Sequence record: MT811961.1
Direction: 5' to 3' (one strand)
DNA: 64,000 nucleotides
The position numbers and the translations under genes are program-made. Below the pieces are notes generated by a model that worked only from the letters and a program-made list of their open reading frames with translations, did not search any database and was not told the origin of the DNA. This document shows, in pieces, positions 508-21,073 of the stretch (the first letter of the stretch is position 1; each line of letters begins with the position of its first letter).

Positions 508-540
508 GAAAAAAAAATACCCACCCCGAAGGGCGGGAAG
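508..540 (-). terminator. Intrinsic terminator of the Ro60-like gene
   Basis: Hairpin at 520-537 preceded on + by an A run (U tract on -). Confidence 0.6.
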
Positions 541-624
541 AAATAGTATCTTAACCAATTAGAAGAACCAGTAAGCCCTCACTTACTCTGTCCCGAAGCT
601 TTTTAAAAAGCCATACTATTTGGT

Positions 625-2175
625 TTATTTTGCGAGGAAGATATCTACAAGCTTGGTTTGCAGAGTACCGATTCCTTTTACTGTTAACAGTCCAGCATGA
701 CGAGGTTCATCCAGAATCACTGTAGCGTCTTCTACGGCGACATGATGAACTATCTTAGTCAATGGGTTACGTCCAGTCAAATACGTATCCAGGGCGTCTA
801 GGAAGCCTTTACGGAAGTGTTCTGACTTAACCACTGGTCGATGTTCATAGATAACCACATTGTCATATGCTACCGGCTGTGTCATCAGAATCTGAATAAA
901 CGACATCGAAGGCATAACAACTCGATCTTTAGGAACTACACGCAGATGATCATAAAGGGCATCGACAGTAACGTTCTTAGGATCTAATACAAATGTACCT
1001 TCTCCAACAATAACAAGATTGCAATGAAGTGACTTGGCACGATCAAGTGCACCGGCAACAACTTCTTTAGAAATCTCATCCCAGTTAAGGAAAAGGAATA
1101 CTGCATTGTTTTCAATACCACGTTCAGGATATTCAACTTCTTCATAGCGACGAAGTAGCAAACGTCTTGTTTCAGGGAAACGTTCTGCATCCAAGGCCTC
1201 ACGATAAATCAATAGATCCACTGGTGTGATGCGCTGGTCTCTTAGCCAACCAGAAACAATACACATAAAGCGATCTGCTAGTTTGTCATCCAAGAATTCA
1301 AACGAAGGATCTATTTTTGCGATTTGCAGGAAGTTTTCCGGAGCTACATGTTTGCCATAGAATAATGCGCTCAGTATCTCAGCATAGTACAAGAACTTCT
1401 TCGGATAGACAGTGTGGTCGAAAGGTAAACCTTCTATCATCTTCGCAGCGGTCTCTACAGAGCCTTTAGCGCACAAGTTAAGGCCTAACACCTCTGAATA
1501 CGTTAAGAAGCGCTGAGGGACTTCTGAGGCGTCTCCACGATATCCTTTGATAATTCGCAGACATGCATCCTGTAGGTCATCACTGCCACGCAGAAACAAA
1601 CGACGTACAAGACTACGGTGGCTAAATGATATCGGTTTTTCATCGAACTGTACCGTTACCTTTTTATGGGCCAATACCTCACCGAGTAGATCACGAGGGT
1701 CTCGTTCAAGATACCAGCGACTAAGTACTTTCTTAACCATGCGGCCAAAGCCACGATAGTAAGAGATGAAACACGCAAAGCGAAGAATGTCTTCTGCATC
1801 CATACACAGATCTACTGCTGTATTTAGAGCATAGCTACTTGCTTCGAAGTCATCCGTATTGCCGGCTACCTTAGCCAGGATGAATAACCGATTTGCTTTT
1901 GTTTCTTTTGTAAATGAATACGATTGGGATACAACAAAACTAGTGATCCCTCTACCGCGTTGCTTGATCTGTTCCTCATAGCCATTGAAAGCCAAGTCGG
2001 AGTAAACTTGATCAGCACAGTCGATAGATGCCACATGACCATTCGAGCCCGTCAATAGAATGCGCTTCAGTGTAGTCTCTAAACTAATCACATTACGTTC
2101 TTTAAGGGAATCCAGCAAAGTACTTAATTCTACTTCGCCTTCGAATAATGTCTGGGTGATTTTATTTTTGTTCAT
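625..2175 (-). CDS. rsr: Ro60/Rsr-like TROVE-vWA RNA-binding protein with degenerate MIDAS motif
   Basis: 516 aa with ordered Ro60-like blocks: LKRILLTGSNG, GFGRMVKKVLSRWYLERD, SFSHRSLVRRL, and C-terminal ALDTYLTGRNPLTKIV...ILDEPRHAGLLTVKGIGTLQTKLVDIF. SD tgagga precedes the ATG. Confidence 0.8.
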   Translation of the reverse strand: MNKNKITQTLFEGEVELSTLLDSLKERNVISLETTLKRILLTGSNGHVASIDCADQVYSDLAFNGYEEQIKQRGRGITSFVVSQSYSFTKETKANRLFILAKVAGNTDDFEASSYALNTAVDLCMDAEDILRFACFISYYRGFGRMVKKVLSRWYLERDPRDLLGEVLAHKKVTVQFDEKPISFSHRSLVRRLFLRGSDDLQDACLRIIKGYRGDASEVPQRFLTYSEVLGLNLCAKGSVETAAKMIEGLPFDHTVYPKKFLYYAEILSALFYGKHVAPENFLQIAKIDPSFEFLDDKLADRFMCIVSGWLRDQRITPVDLLIYREALDAERFPETRRLLLRRYEEVEYPERGIENNAVFLFLNWDEISKEVVAGALDRAKSLHCNLVIVGEGTFVLDPKNVTVDALYDHLRVVPKDRVVMPSMSFIQILMTQPVAYDNVVIYEHRPVVKSEHFRKGFLDALDTYLTGRNPLTKIVHHVAVEDATVILDEPRHAGLLTVKGIGTLQTKLVDIFLAK

Positions 2176-2189
2176 AACAAATCCTCAAT

Positions 2190-2237
2190 AAATAAAAGAG
2201 GTATAGAGTACGGACGACCCACAAGGGCCGTCCGTAC
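2190..2237 (-). terminator. Terminator/attenuator between the candidate Y RNA and the Ro60-like gene
   Basis: Minus-strand hairpin gtacggacggccc-ttgt-gggtcgtccgtac followed by ctcttttattt. Confidence 0.65.
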
Positions 2238-2258
2238 CTACCTGTCCTCTCGGACAAT

Positions 2259-2345
2259 TCAACGAGCGAGGTCTAAACCTACACAGGGCGACTCACTGGG
2301 GTAAAGACCCAGGGTCGACCTGATTCGATCAAGCAGCTCGGCATG
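2259..2345 (-). ncRNA. Candidate YrlA-like Y RNA (circularly permuted tRNA-like module)
   Basis: On - strand: closing stem cgagc/gctcg, T-arm-like gcttg-ATCGAAT-caggt, closed acceptor-like hairpin, GG-containing D-like loop. It lies directly upstream of the Ro60-like gene. Confidence 0.45.
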
Positions 2346-2439
2346 CATGGTCCTACAATGTAGCTCCATGACTCACATTCAAATGCACAGTTTCATTTGG
2401 AGTTCCGACATGATACGCAAGCGTTCATACAGAGTTGTG

Positions 2440-2456
2440 CATACTATTAGGTATAG
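2440..2456 (-). promoter_or_regulatory. Class II (TATG-type) phage promoter driving the Y-like RNA / Ro unit
   Basis: Minus strand ctatacctaatagtatg, near-identical to copies at 6077 and 16220. Confidence 0.6.
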
Positions 2457-4285: not shown

Positions 4286-4291
4286 CATCAT

Positions 4292-4337
4292 GGAGAGGGG
4301 TTATCCTCTCTCCTGCTCTACCTCTTTTTTCTTTTTT
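4292..4337 (+). terminator. Intrinsic terminator
   Basis: ggagagggg-ttat-cctctctcc followed by a T tract. Confidence 0.7.
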
Positions 4338-4405
4338 AAATTTAAAATAACAGACCATTCTAATCGTTTAGTTTTCCAAAAGGGGGAACCGTCTGGGAGG
4401 GGGTT

Positions 4406-4552
4406 TTAGCGTTAATCCTATTAAGACTTAATAGAGAGCTAGATACAGCTAGATAGAGATCATCTAGATCAGAGATAGATGAGAACTAGTAGCTAGCTAA
4501 GTAGATAGGATATCATCGATAGAGAGGGATAGGGACACTGGGATAACGCTAA
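4406..4552. repeat. AGAT/GATA-rich low-complexity tract flanked by a 9-bp inverted repeat
   Basis: ttagcgtta (4406-4414) and taacgctaa (4544-4552) enclose about 10 (A/G)GAT(A) units. Confidence 0.7.
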
Positions 4553-4592
4553 TACAAGCACCTAGATAAAAATTTTCGATTTTTTTTTTCAG

Positions 4593-4628
4593 CTGGCTCG
4601 AAAGAGCTAGTGTTATTATTTTTTTTTT
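4593..4628 (+). terminator. Probable intrinsic terminator
   Basis: ctggctc-gaaa-gagctag followed by a T run. Confidence 0.5.
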
Positions 4629-4704
4629 CGTATTTTGTGACCTATGTGAATTCTGTTGAAATACGTGTATGGGGATATGAGATTTCACGTAGACGGAGAA
4701 ATAC

Positions 4705-4735
4705 CCACTCCCTCCCCCGTTAAGGGGAGAGGTGG
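4705..4735. terminator. GC-rich hairpin, terminator-like
   Basis: ccactccctcccc-cgttaa-ggggagaggtgg. Confidence 0.45.
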
Positions 4736-5580
4736 ATACTTCAATGCGGATAACTCTGGATACTGGGGAATTTTCTTTAAAGTTAATTCGATAGTATTGA
4801 GTTGTGTTGGATCAGACGAGTGTATCTGATACCGATAACTTCTGTGAAAGTTATCACTTAGCTATATAAGTTCGATATCTTCCACATAACCCATGAGGAA
4901 GTATTTACTTATTAATCTGATAGATACATCAGATGAAAATGGATAATGGTCTTAGAGACACATACAGGGACTCTAAGGAGTTAACAATATCATTAACTCA
5001 CAGGGTTTCTAACTAAGTCCTTTAAGAGAAGCAAACAAAATAGAAACTTTGTTAAGATATAAAGGCTCATAGTGGAATTCAAAAGATCTTAATATATTGT
5101 GTCGTAGAATAAAAAACAACCTTATCACCTAGTGTAATAAAATTTTGATATGTTATAAATTCATGTTAGTTAAGTTAGATTATGATATTGTATCTAGTTT
5201 TACTAAGATGAAGTTACACATCATGAGATTCTACTACATAATATCCACGAGATGTAATTACCAACAAATCCATATTTTCTATCAGAGATATAAATAATCA
5301 TGATTCCTCCCTCACGGGAGAAATCTACAAAATCATCTTTATGAGAAAAATAACCACGCGCTCTCGCGCGTTATTATATTTATCTTTATCTTTAGATAAA
5401 GTAAATGGACCTCTCTTTATATTTATTTAACCTGTTATTATTTCTTTTTACTAATTATATCTAAAGATATAAGTATAAAGATATATTAAGCTCGTGTCAA
5501 ATAATTTAATCAGCTGGTTAATTTTGATGAACTGTGGACAAAGCCAGTCACCATAAGGCCTGAGAAAAGTTTTAAGAGAT

Positions 5581-5714
5581 TATACCCAATCTTGTAGACA
5601 ACCATGTTATGACGACGGCGTGGATGAGATCACTGGCGAGTAATCTCTGCATTGTCTATCTCCTCTGAATTACCATCCCTCTCCCACTAGGGAGGGGGGT
5701 AGGTATTATTCTTT
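5581..5714 (+). ncRNA. Candidate small RNA unit U1
   Basis: Promoter-like tatacccaatcttgtag, closing stem agacaa/ttgtct, inner gagat/atctc hairpin, terminator 5671-5714, no ORF. Confidence 0.45.
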
Positions 5715-5741
5715 GTCCTGATGGAAATAAAAAAAAAACAC

Positions 5742-6072
5742 ATACACCCAATAGTATGACTTCAGTGAACCATTAATTGCTCTCCTAAGTGTTGATGTAT
5801 CTCGTTTAGTCCTTTCTTACATTGTTCGGTTCCTGTAAACCGATGGTGCATGATAGTTTCTCTGATCGCCTCCCTTGTGGAAGTTATTTGAGTGAAGCCT
5901 CCAATTTAGATTGTTTTAGTTGTGATGCCTCCTGACCTCAGGTTTGGAGGCTGCCTTCTAAAGTCATCTGCATGAGATTGACCCATTGCAGTTTTACCTT
6001 ATGATCTGCAACGAAACCGTTAAGAGTGTGAAGCCTCCCTGCCTATGGCGGGGAAGCTAATTATTCTTTTAT
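5742..6072 (+). ncRNA. Candidate structured small RNA unit U2 (about 310 nt)
   Basis: Promoter-like atacacccaatagtatg, long-range helix atgactt/aagtcat, several hairpins, terminator 6032-6072. Confidence 0.5.
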
Positions 6073-6076
6073 CAGT

Positions 6077-6258
6077 TTATACCTAATAGTATAGTAAAAG
6101 TGTTGATCTCTTTCTGCTTTTTCTGCATGCCTATTTCCTTGGGCACGTCATCGTTTTGGAAACTGTTCGCTCCTCTGAGCGTGGTGGCTTTCTGATATTA
6201 GACATAATGATTCCTAGAGCTACCCTCCTGCCTTTGGTGGGAGGGTGAATTTCTTTTT
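6077..6258 (+). ncRNA. Candidate small RNA unit U3
   Basis: Promoter-like ttatacctaatagtata, hairpins such as cgctc-ctct-gagcg, terminator 6222-6258. Confidence 0.45.
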
Positions 6259-6267
6259 AACCGTCGT

Positions 6268-6571
6268 GTCTAATGATGTAGCAACGAATTACCATTTGTT
6301 GATTAAAATGCTTTTAATGAATTACCTCAATAAAGCTGAATTCATTGTCGGAGGTCAAGTCCTGTTACCGACTGACAGTGAAGTAGTGGTGGTGTTATTG
6401 CATCGTCCTCGATCTGGACTTTCCTTAGGGTCCAAATAGTAATTGTCTGAAAAGTTACTGCTTTTTTAAATTTCATAACGTTTGTATCGTTATGGGTTGA
6501 CTCAGGAAGAGTCGATCCTTAAGCATCGATGGTGGTGGGGGTGTTGTCCCTCGCCCCGCATCTTATTTTTT
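6268..6571 (+). ncRNA. Candidate small RNA unit U4 (may encode a short peptide)
   Basis: Promoter-like gtctaatgatgtag, hairpins cataacg/cgttatg and gactc/gagtc, terminator 6528-6571. A weak ORF ends at 6439. Confidence 0.35.
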
Positions 6572-6576
6572 ATGTA

Positions 6577-6708
6577 GTCACCTAATCTTATGGTTAAGTG
6601 ACGTATCCAATTCTTTGGTCGGGATTGGACACCTGGATTCTTTCAGGTTCTCTCTTGCTATTCCTCCTGCCCTTCGGGGTGGGAGGTTATAGTTTATTTT
6701 TTGTTTTC
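6577..6708 (+). ncRNA. Candidate small RNA unit U5
   Basis: Promoter-like gtcacctaatcttatg, two hairpins each near attcttt, UUCG terminator 6663-6708. Confidence 0.45.
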
Positions 6709-6795
6709 CTTATTGACAGCGAATCCTATGGGTATAATTTTAGTTAATTAAAGTTACTCCTTCAATCGTATTAGTTAATAAGAGGTAGGCGAAGT

Positions 6796-7077
6796 ATGGG
6801 TACACCGATACTATTCGCGGCTTTAATCGGCTTTAGCTGGCTCATAATTTCTATGGAAAGAAAGTCGGTTTTACGAGAGTGTGAGTCTGAGAAAACTTCG
6901 ACGTTGGGCAAACTCCATTTACTGGCTAGTCATAAATGGCAACCCGATACAGCTGAGAAGAAGATTCAACAGATCGCACAAGTAAGACGAACCAATGGGC
7001 TAGGTAATAAGTTGGTTCCAGGCATCAGCGACGATGACATCAAGCGAGTATGCCGAGACAAAGCTTGCAGTCTCTAA
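6796..7077 (+). CDS. Small membrane-anchored protein, 93 aa
   Basis: SD gaggt and an N-terminal hydrophobic helix. Confidence 0.7.
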   Translation: MGTPILFAALIGFSWLIISMERKSVLRECESEKTSTLGKLHLLASHKWQPDTAEKKIQQIAQVRRTNGLGNKLVPGISDDDIKRVCRDKACSL

Positions 7078-7125
7078 GACTAAAAACAAAAACAACAACC
7101 AATATAGATTATAACAACAAGAGGA

Positions 7126-7515
7126 ATGGCCATGACCAGTTACGGTTATATTGCTCTCGCGTTGGTGATAGGCTTAGTTGCGTTAGCGTCTTGCTGGACT
7201 GTCAGTAAGAAAAGGGATGAAGTTAACCAACAGCACATGGAAAACGTAGAAGAGATACTCGAGAAAAAGAAAGCACCTCCAGTTGAAATGGAAGAGGCCG
7301 ATCTTTATATCGCATTGTTTACTATTTATGCTCGCGACCACGTAACGTCAACTGGACGCAAGCTATCAAGTAACCGTCTAAGTAAACTAGAAGCTGCATA
7401 CCGCGAAGGCTATCAAGTCTTAATGGGTAGAGGCTTACCGGAAATGGATAAGCCATACCAGCGAATCAAAGCTGCTTTGAAGTCACATGATCTCATGGTT
7501 GAGCAAGTGGGCTAA
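7126..7515 (+). CDS. Small membrane-anchored protein, 129 aa
   Basis: SD agagga and an N-terminal TM helix. Confidence 0.7.
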   Translation: MAMTSYGYIALALVIGLVALASCWTVSKKRDEVNQQHMENVEEILEKKKAPPVEMEEADLYIALFTIYARDHVTSTGRKLSSNRLSKLEAAYREGYQVLMGRGLPEMDKPYQRIKAALKSHDLMVEQVG

Positions 7516-7562: not shown

Positions 7563-8327
7563 TTATCGTGTAATACCTAAACGTAAAATACGGTTATATG
7601 TTTTACGATCGTTCATGATTGCCTTGGCAGGAATCTTCTTCAGTTCTTCTTCGTAGATCTCTTTGGCACTTGCGTACTCGTCGATAATCTGACGCATATA
7701 AGAAGAAGGCGCACCACCCCAGCCATCACCGTCGCCTACCTTTCCAGCAAGCTCAATGTTGATCAGGTGCTTGGCTGCCAAAACAGCTAGCTGTGCAATT
7801 GATCTCTGGAAGCGTGGATTGATGTTTCCTAGGTTGTCATCATGGGCAAGTTGACAGCGAACAAAGGTTCTCCAGCCTAAACTCCATTCATAAACAGCAA
7901 TGGTGTTTGGTGCTACGAGTTCTGCTCGTGCTGTACCCGTGCCTCTTGGTCCCATAGAAGCTTCGCCAACAATAGCAGACAAACCACCTTGTGCCATACC
8001 GATGTCGTCATTGTCCATTTCTAAACTATGGACAGCAGTAATGCGACGGCCATGTGTTCTGCTAGTCGGGATCTTAAATACATGTGCATTGTTGATCTGC
8101 TGATAAGGAAGATCATGCACAGGAATCGTTTCGCTTTGACCGCTAACTAAGTTAAGGTCAACCATCAAGTAATCACGTACGACCTTTTGTTCAATATAGT
8201 ATTCCAGGTTATATGTATCATACGCACTCCATTGCGATTGCGGTTTAAATGCACGCGTTAGAATGTTCTTGTCGATATCTGCCATGATGCGTTGAACGCA
8301 CAAGGCTATACAGCTGTTGTATGACAT
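7563..8327 (-). CDS. Conserved virion protein, possibly T4 gp13-like neck/head-tail adaptor
   Basis: Likely start MSYNSC. C-terminal GG...RQIIDEYASAKEIYEEEL pattern recalls neck proteins. Position matches the phiKZ-like core block. Confidence 0.45.
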   Translation of the reverse strand: MSYNSCIALCVQRIMADIDKNILTRAFKPQSQWSAYDTYNLEYYIEQKVVRDYLMVDLNLVSGQSETIPVHDLPYQQINNAHVFKIPTSRTHGRRITAVHSLEMDNDDIGMAQGGLSAIVGEASMGPRGTGTARAELVAPNTIAVYEWSLGWRTFVRCQLAHDDNLGNINPRFQRSIAQLAVLAAKHLINIELAGKVGDGDGWGGAPSSYMRQIIDEYASAKEIYEEELKKIPAKAIMNDRKTYNRILRLGITR

Positions 8328-19750: not shown

Positions 19751-21073
19751 AAAATAAAACAATACCTCTAAGGAGGGTACATGGAAATCGTGATCAACGG
19801 CATGATTTTCAGACGCTCTGGCCAGCATCCTTCACTTGCAGTCTCTGTTTGTGGAAGGGTCTATAATCTGAATTTAAAACAAGAAGCAGAGATCAATCCA
19901 CCAAAGGAAAATTGGTAGCTGACTCTAACCTCACCGGATACGAACAAGACGATTCTCTTGCATCGTCTCGTTGCCGAATCGTGGGTTATAAATCCAGATC
20001 CGTTATTGTTCAAGGTCGTCAATCATTTAAATGGCGACAAGCACAACCCCCATGCTAGAAATTTGGAGTGGACTACCTATCGTGGTAATCTTCTACATGC
20101 CTATGCACTGGGGCTGAGGACTGAAATGAAGTCCTTGGAAGTTTTCGACAAAGTCAAGAAAATTTGGTTTAAATCGGATGGCGTCAATGCGACGTCAGAA
20201 AAGATCGGTTTGTCTTCGGCTCAGCTTTCATATCATCTGAAAGTTTCTGGTTGGTATGAGAACGATAGTCATATCGTACAACTGCCCAATCTAGAAGAGC
20301 GAGTAATTCCAGGTACGTTATCGGTAACTGATTCTGTTTATGCTAAGCATATCGAAACAGGAAAAGTTTATGTCGATGTCAATGTCGCATCACTGGCAAG
20401 ACAGATAAATGTACCAAAATCAAATATCAAGCGGGTATTAAAGAAAGGCAAGGAGTACCCAACGGGTGGTTTCTTGTTTAGTCTCGATGGTGAGTTTCCT
20501 GAAACTTTCAGGTACAATCATCGCACTGCGGTGAATTATTGCCTGGTTAATGAAACTGGCGATGAAATCACTGGAACTAGTATTCGCGATCTTATATCGA
20601 AAACAAAGATTAACGGAAAACGACTCAGTAGGATGAAGAAGGAAAATACTTCTTTCAAAGGCTGGAAGTTTAAATTGTAAGTCCGCCCCTATGGTGACAT
20701 ACGGGTGAGAGTGTGTTAATTGCTGGTAAAGTCTAAAGCCCAACACCAAAACGGAATCCGAAAGGATAGACGGCAATGGTGACGAAAGTCAGAAAAGACG
20801 TTGGGATGGCCTATGGTGAGAGCCTAAGGGTTTTGATAATGGACAATTCGAGCAGCCAAGTGCCTAAGTATATCCGTGAGGATAGATATGGTAAAGGTTC
20901 AACGACTAAGGGATTCTGCACCCTGTAGGGGCCAAGTGGCTTCCAAACGCACACGCCTCGGGTTGACTGAAGAAGTCTTATCCCCGAGGATTGATATAGT
21001 CTCGGCGTCCAGTGAAAACCTGGAGAAGTTCATAAGAGAACTGCATAGATTAACGACCTATGTGAAGACTCCG
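19751..21073 (+). mobile_element. Group I self-splicing intron with homing endonuclease
   Basis: Core elements: aattgctgg (20718), aattcgagcagcc (20845), gttcaacgacta (20897), gatatagtct (20993). P3 gtgtgtt/aacgcac, P7 gacta/tagtc, terminal G. Removal restores NADFDGD in frame. Confidence 0.92.
19781..20680 (+). pseudogene. NUMOD4-HNH homing endonuclease with in-frame TAG at 19916-19918
   Basis: SD aggagg plus ATG 19781 is in frame with LHRLVAESW..NHLNGDKHNPHARNLEW. One amber codon falls at codon 46. Confidence 0.75.

Follow-up and report, generated by a model that had tools for sequence, protein, structure and literature searches.

Vibrio phage vB_pir03 is a jumbo phage with a genome of 286 kb and several split multisubunit RNA polymerase genes (PMC7765460). 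Here, we analyzed a stretch of 64,000 nucleotides (nt) from its sequence record (MT811961.1), referred to below as the window, in which a position equals the record position minus 62000, and we focused on a tandem array of five putative small RNA (sRNA) units that lie head to tail, all on the plus strand, at about 5582–6715. The region around the array (5300–7100) is a 100% match to vB_pir03 and an 87.9% match to Vibrio phage C-ZP2022. Chimallin, a PhuZ-like tubulin neighborhood and a homolog of phiKZ gp42 are encoded in the window and in related phages, and these genes, together with the phage's own polymerases, indicate that vB_pir03 is a phiKZ-like phage that forms a nucleus and transcribes its own genes.

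All five units are built to one plan, namely a promoter core preceded by an A/T-rich 'AC' element, a U-rich body (about 65–265 nt), a strong GC hairpin and a T tail. Unit 1 (5582–5714) has its core at 5586–5597 and its terminator stem at 5675–5700, and would give an RNA of about 125 nt; the corresponding values are 5748–5759, 6030–6058 and about 319 nt for unit 2 (5744–6072), 6083–6094, 6221–6247 and about 164 nt for unit 3 (6079–6258), 6270–6281, 6538–6557 and about 291 nt for unit 4 (6266–6571), and 6582–6593, 6663–6686 and about 111 nt, with two short hairpins, for unit 5 (6578–6708). Each stem is followed by a T-rich tail, and these tails end near 5714, 6072, 6258, 6571 and 6708. The five promoter-to-terminator units proposed in a first-pass annotation of this DNA were thus recovered, with five cores and five terminators in register; its promoter positions lie within about 7 nt of the cores found here, and its size range of 100–310 nt agrees with the predicted RNA lengths. 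Between 4500 and 8000, 16 terminator-like sites were observed, compared with 2.3 ± 1.6 in shuffled sequences, and in six phages, 28 of 28 units have a hairpin (−12 to −30 kcal/mol) with a T-rich tail behind it.

Relatives were sought with the phiKZ gp42-like DUF7484 protein (7563–8327, minus strand) as the anchor, which matched sm033 at 63% on the amino acid (aa) level and three phages assembled from public sequencing runs (SRA; L005, L006 and L007) at 58–63%. The local gene order is common to the relatives: next to the anchor come genes of about 128 and about 93 aa, then a gene-free gap, several small genes and finally a Ro60-like gene. The gap, which adjoins the 93-aa, 128-aa and DUF7484 genes, is 1.3–1.75 kb long in sm033 and the three SRA assemblies, and in each of them this syntenic site is occupied by units built like those of vB_pir03, of which sm033 has seven, L005 four or five, L006 four and L007 three. 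Therefore, with C-ZP2022, the array is present at the syntenic site in five relatives, with 3–7 units each. The BONAISHI and Yong phages have the anchor gene and no array at the syntenic site. Further relatives were not found in the IMG/VR and JGI metagenomes, either by protein search or with a DNA pattern derived from the unit 1 motifs; the matches to the DNA pattern lay in coding DNA, had promoter and terminator context in 0 of 120 cases, and were dismissed as chance. The comparisons below accordingly cover six lineages, which include two close pairs.

Promoter motif, constraint and coding potential

The promoter core is a degenerate 12-mer with the consensus C-Y-AAT-NN-T-R-T-R-R, and 29 instances from five phages have in common an extended motif in which an A/T-rich run ending in 'AC' lies 11–12 nt before the AAT of the core. 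The terminator T tract of each array unit doubles as the A/T-rich run of the next unit's promoter. When the genome was scanned as seven separate pieces, the core was not enriched (13 matches in 286 kb vs. 14 ± 2.9 in shuffles), and therefore the motif count alone proves nothing. However, five of these 13 matches fall within 1.1 kb on one strand, in the array, each 10–45 nt downstream of a terminator, and the substitutions between vB_pir03 and C-ZP2022 within the array cores hit degenerate positions. This clustering, the position behind terminators, the substitution pattern and the recurrence in five other phages indicate that the array is not random. No promoter in the genome scores higher than that of unit 5.

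The same core also precedes protein genes at orthologous sites. It lies upstream of chimallin (16228 in the window, 2061 in L006 and 2141 in L007, with identical 20-mers), of a divergent DNA polymerase (12597 in the window, 208 in the related sequence L003, 1569 in L005, 5673 in L006 and 5756 in L007) and of the tail sheath gene (51367 in the record and 24743 in L003), and it is also found upstream of UvsW and on both sides of the Ro60-like gene. In phiKZ, the early motif consists of an extended −10 element with an upstream T-rich part, the middle-type motif has an A-rich run and then 'TACT' about 22 nt upstream, and chimallin has both early and middle promoters (PMC8244752). The array motif resembles these descriptions, and its upstream A/T-rich 'AC' element is like the phiKZ middle-type motif. 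An 'early promoter' label, first favored because of chimallin, was dropped, since the core precedes the tail sheath gene and the upstream element is middle-type-like.

A sixth promoter of this type (feature 6720–7077, plus strand, AAT at 6722) is placed to drive the 93-aa open reading frame (ORF) at 6796–7077, which closes the array in all six phages. Attenuation in a 5' untranslated region (5'UTR) was considered for the units and rejected, because units 1–4 each precede another unit and unit 5 precedes the separate promoter of the 93-aa ORF.

Between vB_pir03 and C-ZP2022, units 1–5 differ by 13%, 12%, 6%, 22% and 3%, respectively (unit 3 is 93.6% and unit 5 97% identical), whereas four-fold degenerate sites in seven flanking genes differ at 0.33–0.36. 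Since the units are far less divergent than the four-fold sites, the array is under purifying selection. Unit 5, unit 3 and the 3' half of unit 2 (about 5885–6072), which is near-invariant and contains three GCCUCC boxes, are conserved more than the adjacent coding DNA. In distant lineages only the promoters and terminators align, with two exceptions: a unit bearing the motif GACGACG, and the long second unit of sm033 and L005, which is alignable between these two phages.

The last pattern could be explained if the units act at the level of DNA or transcription, for example as an insulator, as a polymerase sink or dosage device for the 93-aa gene, or as a replication or packaging landmark, with the transcripts as by-products. 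The promoters and terminators are indeed the best-conserved parts across distant lineages, the terminator T tracts serve as promoter upstream elements as well, and the array is located in a long, partly AT-rich gene-free island with other conserved non-coding elements. However, the unit bodies are constrained far below the neutral rate between vB_pir03 and C-ZP2022, short motifs in the bodies are conserved across lineages, and the array has no GC-skew switch specific to it. A DNA-level role is therefore improbable in our judgment.

It might also be argued that the units are mini-genes, each translated into a very small protein, as the GenBank record of vB_pir03 has 11 hypothetical-protein ORFs of 29–49 aa across 5510–6747, and a 31-aa GTG ORF (6100–6195) and a 26-aa ORF (5906–5986, minus strand) stay open in C-ZP2022. 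However, most vB_pir03 ORFs of at least 18 aa are stopped or frameshifted in C-ZP2022, such as the annotated 44-aa ORF of unit 4 (6308–6439), which has a premature stop there; the few that survive are missing an ATG or a ribosome-binding site, or else overlap one another out of frame, and no ORF in the array combines an ATG, a ribosome-binding site and conservation. The record of C-ZP2022 has two ORFs inside the array and one upstream, and all three differ from the vB_pir03 calls. Peptide conservation between lineages was not found when all stop-to-stop translations of all arrays were compared; the best E value in this tiny database was about 2e-4, a level expected from shared promoter and terminator DNA. 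Furthermore, the frame in which the conserved GACGACG stretch would be read varies from phage to phage. Two antisense candidates were rejected as well: an ORF at 5572–5652 (minus strand) has a good ribosome-binding site but is frameshifted in C-ZP2022 and has the motif in another frame in sm033, and an antisense ATG behind an AGGAGA box is absent in C-ZP2022. Translation of the units as mini-genes is scarcely credible on this evidence, the 11 tiny 'hypothetical proteins' are probably annotation artefacts rather than genes, and the earlier view that the region holds no convincing ORFs is borne out, as no reading frame is conserved.

Taken together, synteny in six phages, purifying selection and the lack of a conserved frame make a dedicated battery of phage sRNAs, which the first-pass annotation had put forward, the best reading of this locus, and we are confident that the array units are non-coding RNA genes.

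RNA features and possible mode of action

A search of Rfam returned nothing credible in the array at gathering thresholds or at E ≤ 10, so that no family was assigned. The units had been described as neither transfer RNAs (tRNAs) nor an array of clustered regularly interspaced short palindromic repeats (CRISPR), and both statements hold: ARAGORN found no tRNA or transfer-messenger RNA genes in the whole window, and the array has no CRISPR-like repeats and no match to CRISPR direct repeats (CRISPR-DR), the segments shared among its units being promoters and terminator arms only. There are also no near-identical direct repeats in the array of the kind expected for a CRISPR-repeat mimic (RNA anti-CRISPR), and an antitoxin-like RNA of type III (ToxI type) was rejected, as tandem identical repeats are absent and the neighboring genes have no family assignment. 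By contrast, the units have what a stand-alone sRNA gene should have, judging from the sequence, namely a promoter of their own, an intrinsic terminator of their own and no ORF.

Without their terminators, the unit bodies are U-rich (24–47% U) and fold modestly better than dinucleotide shuffles (mean z −1.33; 26 of 28 negative, five below −2), and the body of unit 4 is the most structured of the array (z −3.9). In the predicted fold of unit 1, a 5' hairpin (5602–5623) presents GACGACG in its loop and the sequence UCUCCU is single-stranded at 5659–5664. The GACGACG-bearing unit is the first of the array in vB_pir03, C-ZP2022, sm033, L006 and L007, and the second in L005, where it follows a segment resembling 'unit 0' (described below). 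In this unit UCUCCU is invariant a few nt before the terminator, and the stem below the GACGACG loop varies with pairing kept across lineages (G-C; U.G/A-U/U-A; A-U/C-G; C-G/A-U; C-G/U-A). A search for phage targets of the GACGACG loop gave chance-level matches only.

The box UCUCCU belongs to a wider pattern. In 10 of 23 units, a pyrimidine box, UCUC(C/U)U or UUCUC(C/U), lies within the 25 nt upstream of the terminator, compared with 0.8 ± 0.9 units after shuffling, and it is 8-fold denser in this interval than in the remaining bodies, although the box was defined post hoc and orthologous units are not independent. In unit 5 it reads UUCUCUCUU (6648–6656). Among the long ORFs of the window, the commonest words before the start codon are AGGAG (14 of 43) and AGGAGA (9 of 43), and AGGAGA is the exact complement of the unit 1 box UCUCCU. 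A pyrimidine box in these 10 of 23 units and T-rich tails in all units are what would be expected of an Hfq-type 3' module.

Based on these features, we propose the following model. Each unit would be transcribed by a phage multisubunit RNA polymerase from a promoter of the type used for chimallin, DNA polymerase and tail sheath, and each transcript would stop at its own intrinsic terminator, giving U-rich RNAs of about 110–320 nt with a GC hairpin and a U tail at the end. Many of these RNAs would expose a short pyrimidine box (UCUCCU or UUCUCUYUU) just 5' of the hairpin, through which they might act in trans by short pairing, most plausibly with the purine-rich ribosome-binding regions of phage and/or host mRNAs. 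The 3' module of U-rich stretch, hairpin and U tail is of the type bound by chaperones such as Hfq, and we infer that it could be used in this way here. A cluster of autonomous sRNA genes acting in trans by base pairing is the best explanation of the array, which we hold with somewhat less than even confidence, as belief is split between the proposed mechanism and its rivals; the more specific form, in which a chaperone assists pairing to purine-rich ribosome-binding regions, is possible but more doubtful.

Besides the post hoc definition of the box, several points weigh against this model. The transcripts of the array units and their ends are predictions, and the mixed genes behind the core leave the promoters without an assignable temporal class. 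Complementarity to a ribosome-binding hexamer is generic, and specific RNA targets were not found in the 64-kb window or in the relatives' loci. Support from covariation, a check raised by the first-pass annotation, is partial: pairwise RNAalifold, which cannot report broken pairs, detected a small number of compensatory changes, which lie in units 1, 2 and 4 and in unit 1 of L006/L007, and with six lineages, two close pairs among them, this evidence is thin. In addition, a covariance model trained without vB_pir03 and C-ZP2022 misses the unit 1 hairpin of vB_pir03 at default settings and matches it weakly with filters off (8.9 bits, E 0.27 over 1.3 kb). Given this weak match, we claim shared motifs and position for the first unit of vB_pir03 and C-ZP2022, rather than orthology of the hairpin. 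A formal covariation count for the same hairpin was discarded, since MAFFT had misplaced a gap outside the loop and the model built on that alignment learned the misregister.

Rather than pairing with mRNAs, the RNAs might be abundant decoys or sponges that titrate a host RNA-binding factor (a chaperone, a degradosome component or RNase, or a translation factor) or an RNA-sensing defense. Such a role would suit the many units, whose bodies change fast while the 3' modules stay constant and the short boxes repeat, and the copy number of 3–7 among relatives fits dosage-type selection. The equivalent neighborhood of phiKZ, near the gp42 and PhuZ homologs, presumably encodes a protein inhibitor of the degradosome, which would be in keeping with a target of this kind. 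However, no sponge family was matched, Rfam being empty for the array, and there are no CRISPR-repeat or antitoxin-like repeats. Further, the conservation of unit 3, unit 5 and the 3' half of unit 2 extends well past the 3' modules, suggesting sequence-specific roles. In our judgment, titration is rather unlikely.

The closest known systems include bacterial trans-acting sRNAs of the Hfq type. Their 3' module, consisting of a terminator hairpin, a U tail and a U-rich stretch, is the chaperone-binding site. The array units are like these sRNAs in size, in the 3' terminator with an adjacent pyrimidine- or U-rich stretch, in the conserved single-stranded boxes and in having their own promoters, but their genes belong to a lytic jumbo phage and would be read by a phage polymerase. 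The Qrr-type sets of Vibrio comprise several RNAs of about 100 nt with their own promoters and terminators, which are dispersed and depend on a host sigma factor. They are similar to the array in size and in the individual promoters and terminators, whereas the array is tandem and without an Rfam match even at E ≤ 10.

Within the chimalliviruses, non-coding RNA candidates of phiKZ and 201phi2-1 were identified by differential RNA sequencing (dRNA-seq) and ONT-cappable-seq; they are scattered and mostly derived from 5'UTRs, and include one conserved 5'UTR sRNA (PMC11512511, PMC10914365, PMC8244752). These candidates resemble the array in that they occur in phages with multisubunit polymerases and chimallin and are short promoter-to-intrinsic-terminator transcripts. 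However, they arise at scattered places by premature termination before a gene, whereas the array consists of five (3–7 among relatives) stand-alone, syntenic genes with their own promoters in a gene-free island, and neither sequence nor Rfam similarity between the two was found. In our literature searches we came across no account of stand-alone RNA genes clustered in tandem and in synteny in a chimallivirus, nor any work on this locus.

Nucleus-forming jumbo phages split transcription from translation, and their non-coding RNAs are hardly known. A locus with up to seven constrained, putatively stand-alone RNA genes, variable in copy number and preceded by a chimallin-type promoter, would allow one to ask how RNAs control host or phage translation and how RNAs exit the phage nucleus.

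The Ro60-like gene and its flanking RNAs

A 516-aa protein with a profile match to the TROVE-vWA domains of Ro60 is encoded at 625–2175 (minus strand). As a single sequence it has no match to Pfam TROVE at E ≤ 0.1 and none in PDB, and it matches the NCBIfam Rsr model at E 0.038 only. However, a profile built from the six proteins of the clade aligns over its full length with the Rsr of phage BONAISHI (hhalign 97.9%, E 3e-13, 457 columns), a clear Rsr in which TROVE and Ro60-vWA domains are both present, and the sole PDB match of the clade profile is Ro60 (1YVP, E 0.014). By these two profile matches, the 516-aa protein is probably a very divergent Ro60 homolog. The Ro60 homolog that the first-pass annotation had placed about 3 kb from the array is thus supported, at a distance of 3.4 kb, although it is very divergent and recognizable at the profile level only. 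Public annotation is thereby corrected in two places: in addition to the 11 tiny 'hypothetical proteins', the protein annotated as 'TROVE' appears to be a very divergent Ro60 relative with flanking RNAs.

These flanking RNAs are two predicted units that carry the same promoter core as the array. Upstream of the gene, a unit of about 260 nt (2188–2451, minus strand) has its core at about 2439–2451 and a hairpin at 2208–2237, just before the Ro60-like start codon. A short unit of about 100 nt (509–622, minus strand; core 611–622, terminator about 521–536) starts right behind the stop codon. Counterparts of the two units, with short conserved boxes, were recognized in L006, L007 and sm033.

The RNAs of the array might likewise be Ro60 partners or substrates, either as extra Y-like adaptors or as cargo, in which case the phage would possess a ribonucleoprotein that redirects host RNA decay or quality control. 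The array is linked to the Ro60-like gene in all six clade phages, the Ro60-flanking RNAs use the promoter core of the array, and bacteria often have several Y RNAs near rsr, some of which are missed by sequence searches (PMC4201824). In this respect the array is comparable to Y RNAs and YrlA, which also occur as several small non-coding RNAs near a Ro60 homolog, in phages as well (PMC4201824). However, the gene order of the clade is conserved overall, and therefore the linkage weighs little, and five protein genes lie between the array and the Ro60-like gene.

The hallmarks of the class are also lacking. Y RNAs are typically 80–130 nt long; their two ends pair in a long stem that harbors the Ro60 site, and they have a large internal loop (PMC4201824). 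The array RNAs are predicted to be 111–319 nt long, three of the five far above that range; no stem joining the 5' and 3' ends was seen in the minimum free energy or alifold structures of array units, whose 3' ends are terminator hairpins; and the T and D arms of YrlA are absent. The Y-RNA motif GNCGAAN0-1G, searched as a regular expression over 29 units, matched once, inside a terminator loop. Moreover, the positions adjacent to the Ro60-like gene, where a Y RNA should lie, are occupied by the two other RNAs, at 2188–2451 and 509–622, which are better Y-RNA candidates than the array.

Phage BONAISHI offers a further comparison. It has a clear Rsr and no array at the syntenic site, and the spacer upstream of its Rsr gene (L004, 11110–11875) contains two tRNA-like T-arm/D-arm modules, with a similar promoter core at about 11185; the Ro60-adjacent RNA has the GNCGAAN0-1G motif and two T-loops. 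From its sequence features, this spacer is a classical YrlA-type arrangement in a chimallivirus. Given the missing hallmarks, the terminator 3' ends, the five intervening genes, the flanking RNAs of the gene itself and the BONAISHI arrangement, the tie between array and Ro60 homolog drawn in the first-pass annotation is not supported, and array RNAs that partner Ro60 are unlikely.

Still less probable than either Ro60 partnership or a DNA-level role, in our estimation, is that the array RNAs, the two Ro60-flanking RNAs and the Ro60 homolog form one RNA-protein system, in which modular guide-like RNAs use their pyrimidine boxes to direct Ro60 and, by way of it, a host exonuclease to the ribosome-binding regions of host mRNAs. 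If this were true, the RNA-Ro60 system would be a programmable device for host shut-off that is made in, or exported from, the phage nucleus.

Other elements around the array

The gene-free island that contains the array extends over 2.5 kb (4286–6795) and is opened by 'unit 0' (4372–4630, plus strand), a transcript-like stretch outside the array that is rich in purines, CTAG and GATAG; its G-rich 5' box is conserved, and its terminator lies at 4592–4611. Unit 0 is also present in sm033, L005, L006 and L007, and it stands directly before the GACGACG unit in sm033 and L005 only. Pairing of unit 0, with its many purines, to the pyrimidine-rich RNAs of the array was considered and rejected, as the duplex energies were no better than those of shuffles (z −1.7 to +2.0). 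Behind unit 0, the segment 4700–4775 (plus strand) comprises a GC hairpin and, after it, a ~20-nt box (GGATAACTCTGGAT.TGGGG), and this arrangement is conserved in vB_pir03, L006 and L007.

Between unit 0 and the array, the segment 5380–5500 has a GC content of 32%, is near-invariant between vB_pir03 and C-ZP2022, and contains a perfect 12-nt inverted repeat (5387–5398 and 5458–5469). A sigma-70-like promoter on the minus strand (5500–5472, 11/12 match) faces minus-strand terminators at 5371–5356 and 5325–5302. This segment could be a small RNA read by the host polymerase or a protein-binding site.

On the other side of the array, an A-rich (AAC)n run between the 93-aa and the 127-aa genes (7083–7158, plus strand) is fully conserved in C-ZP2022 and has a weak CrcZ-like match in Rfam (24 bits, E 0.0024), well short of the gathering score. 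No known RNA-binding families were found among the neighboring small proteins, one of which, of 59 aa, has a zinc ribbon. Farther away, a group I intron (20646–21025, plus strand; Rfam 54.7 bits) lies in the region of an RNA polymerase beta'-like gene, beside an HNH endonuclease ORF.

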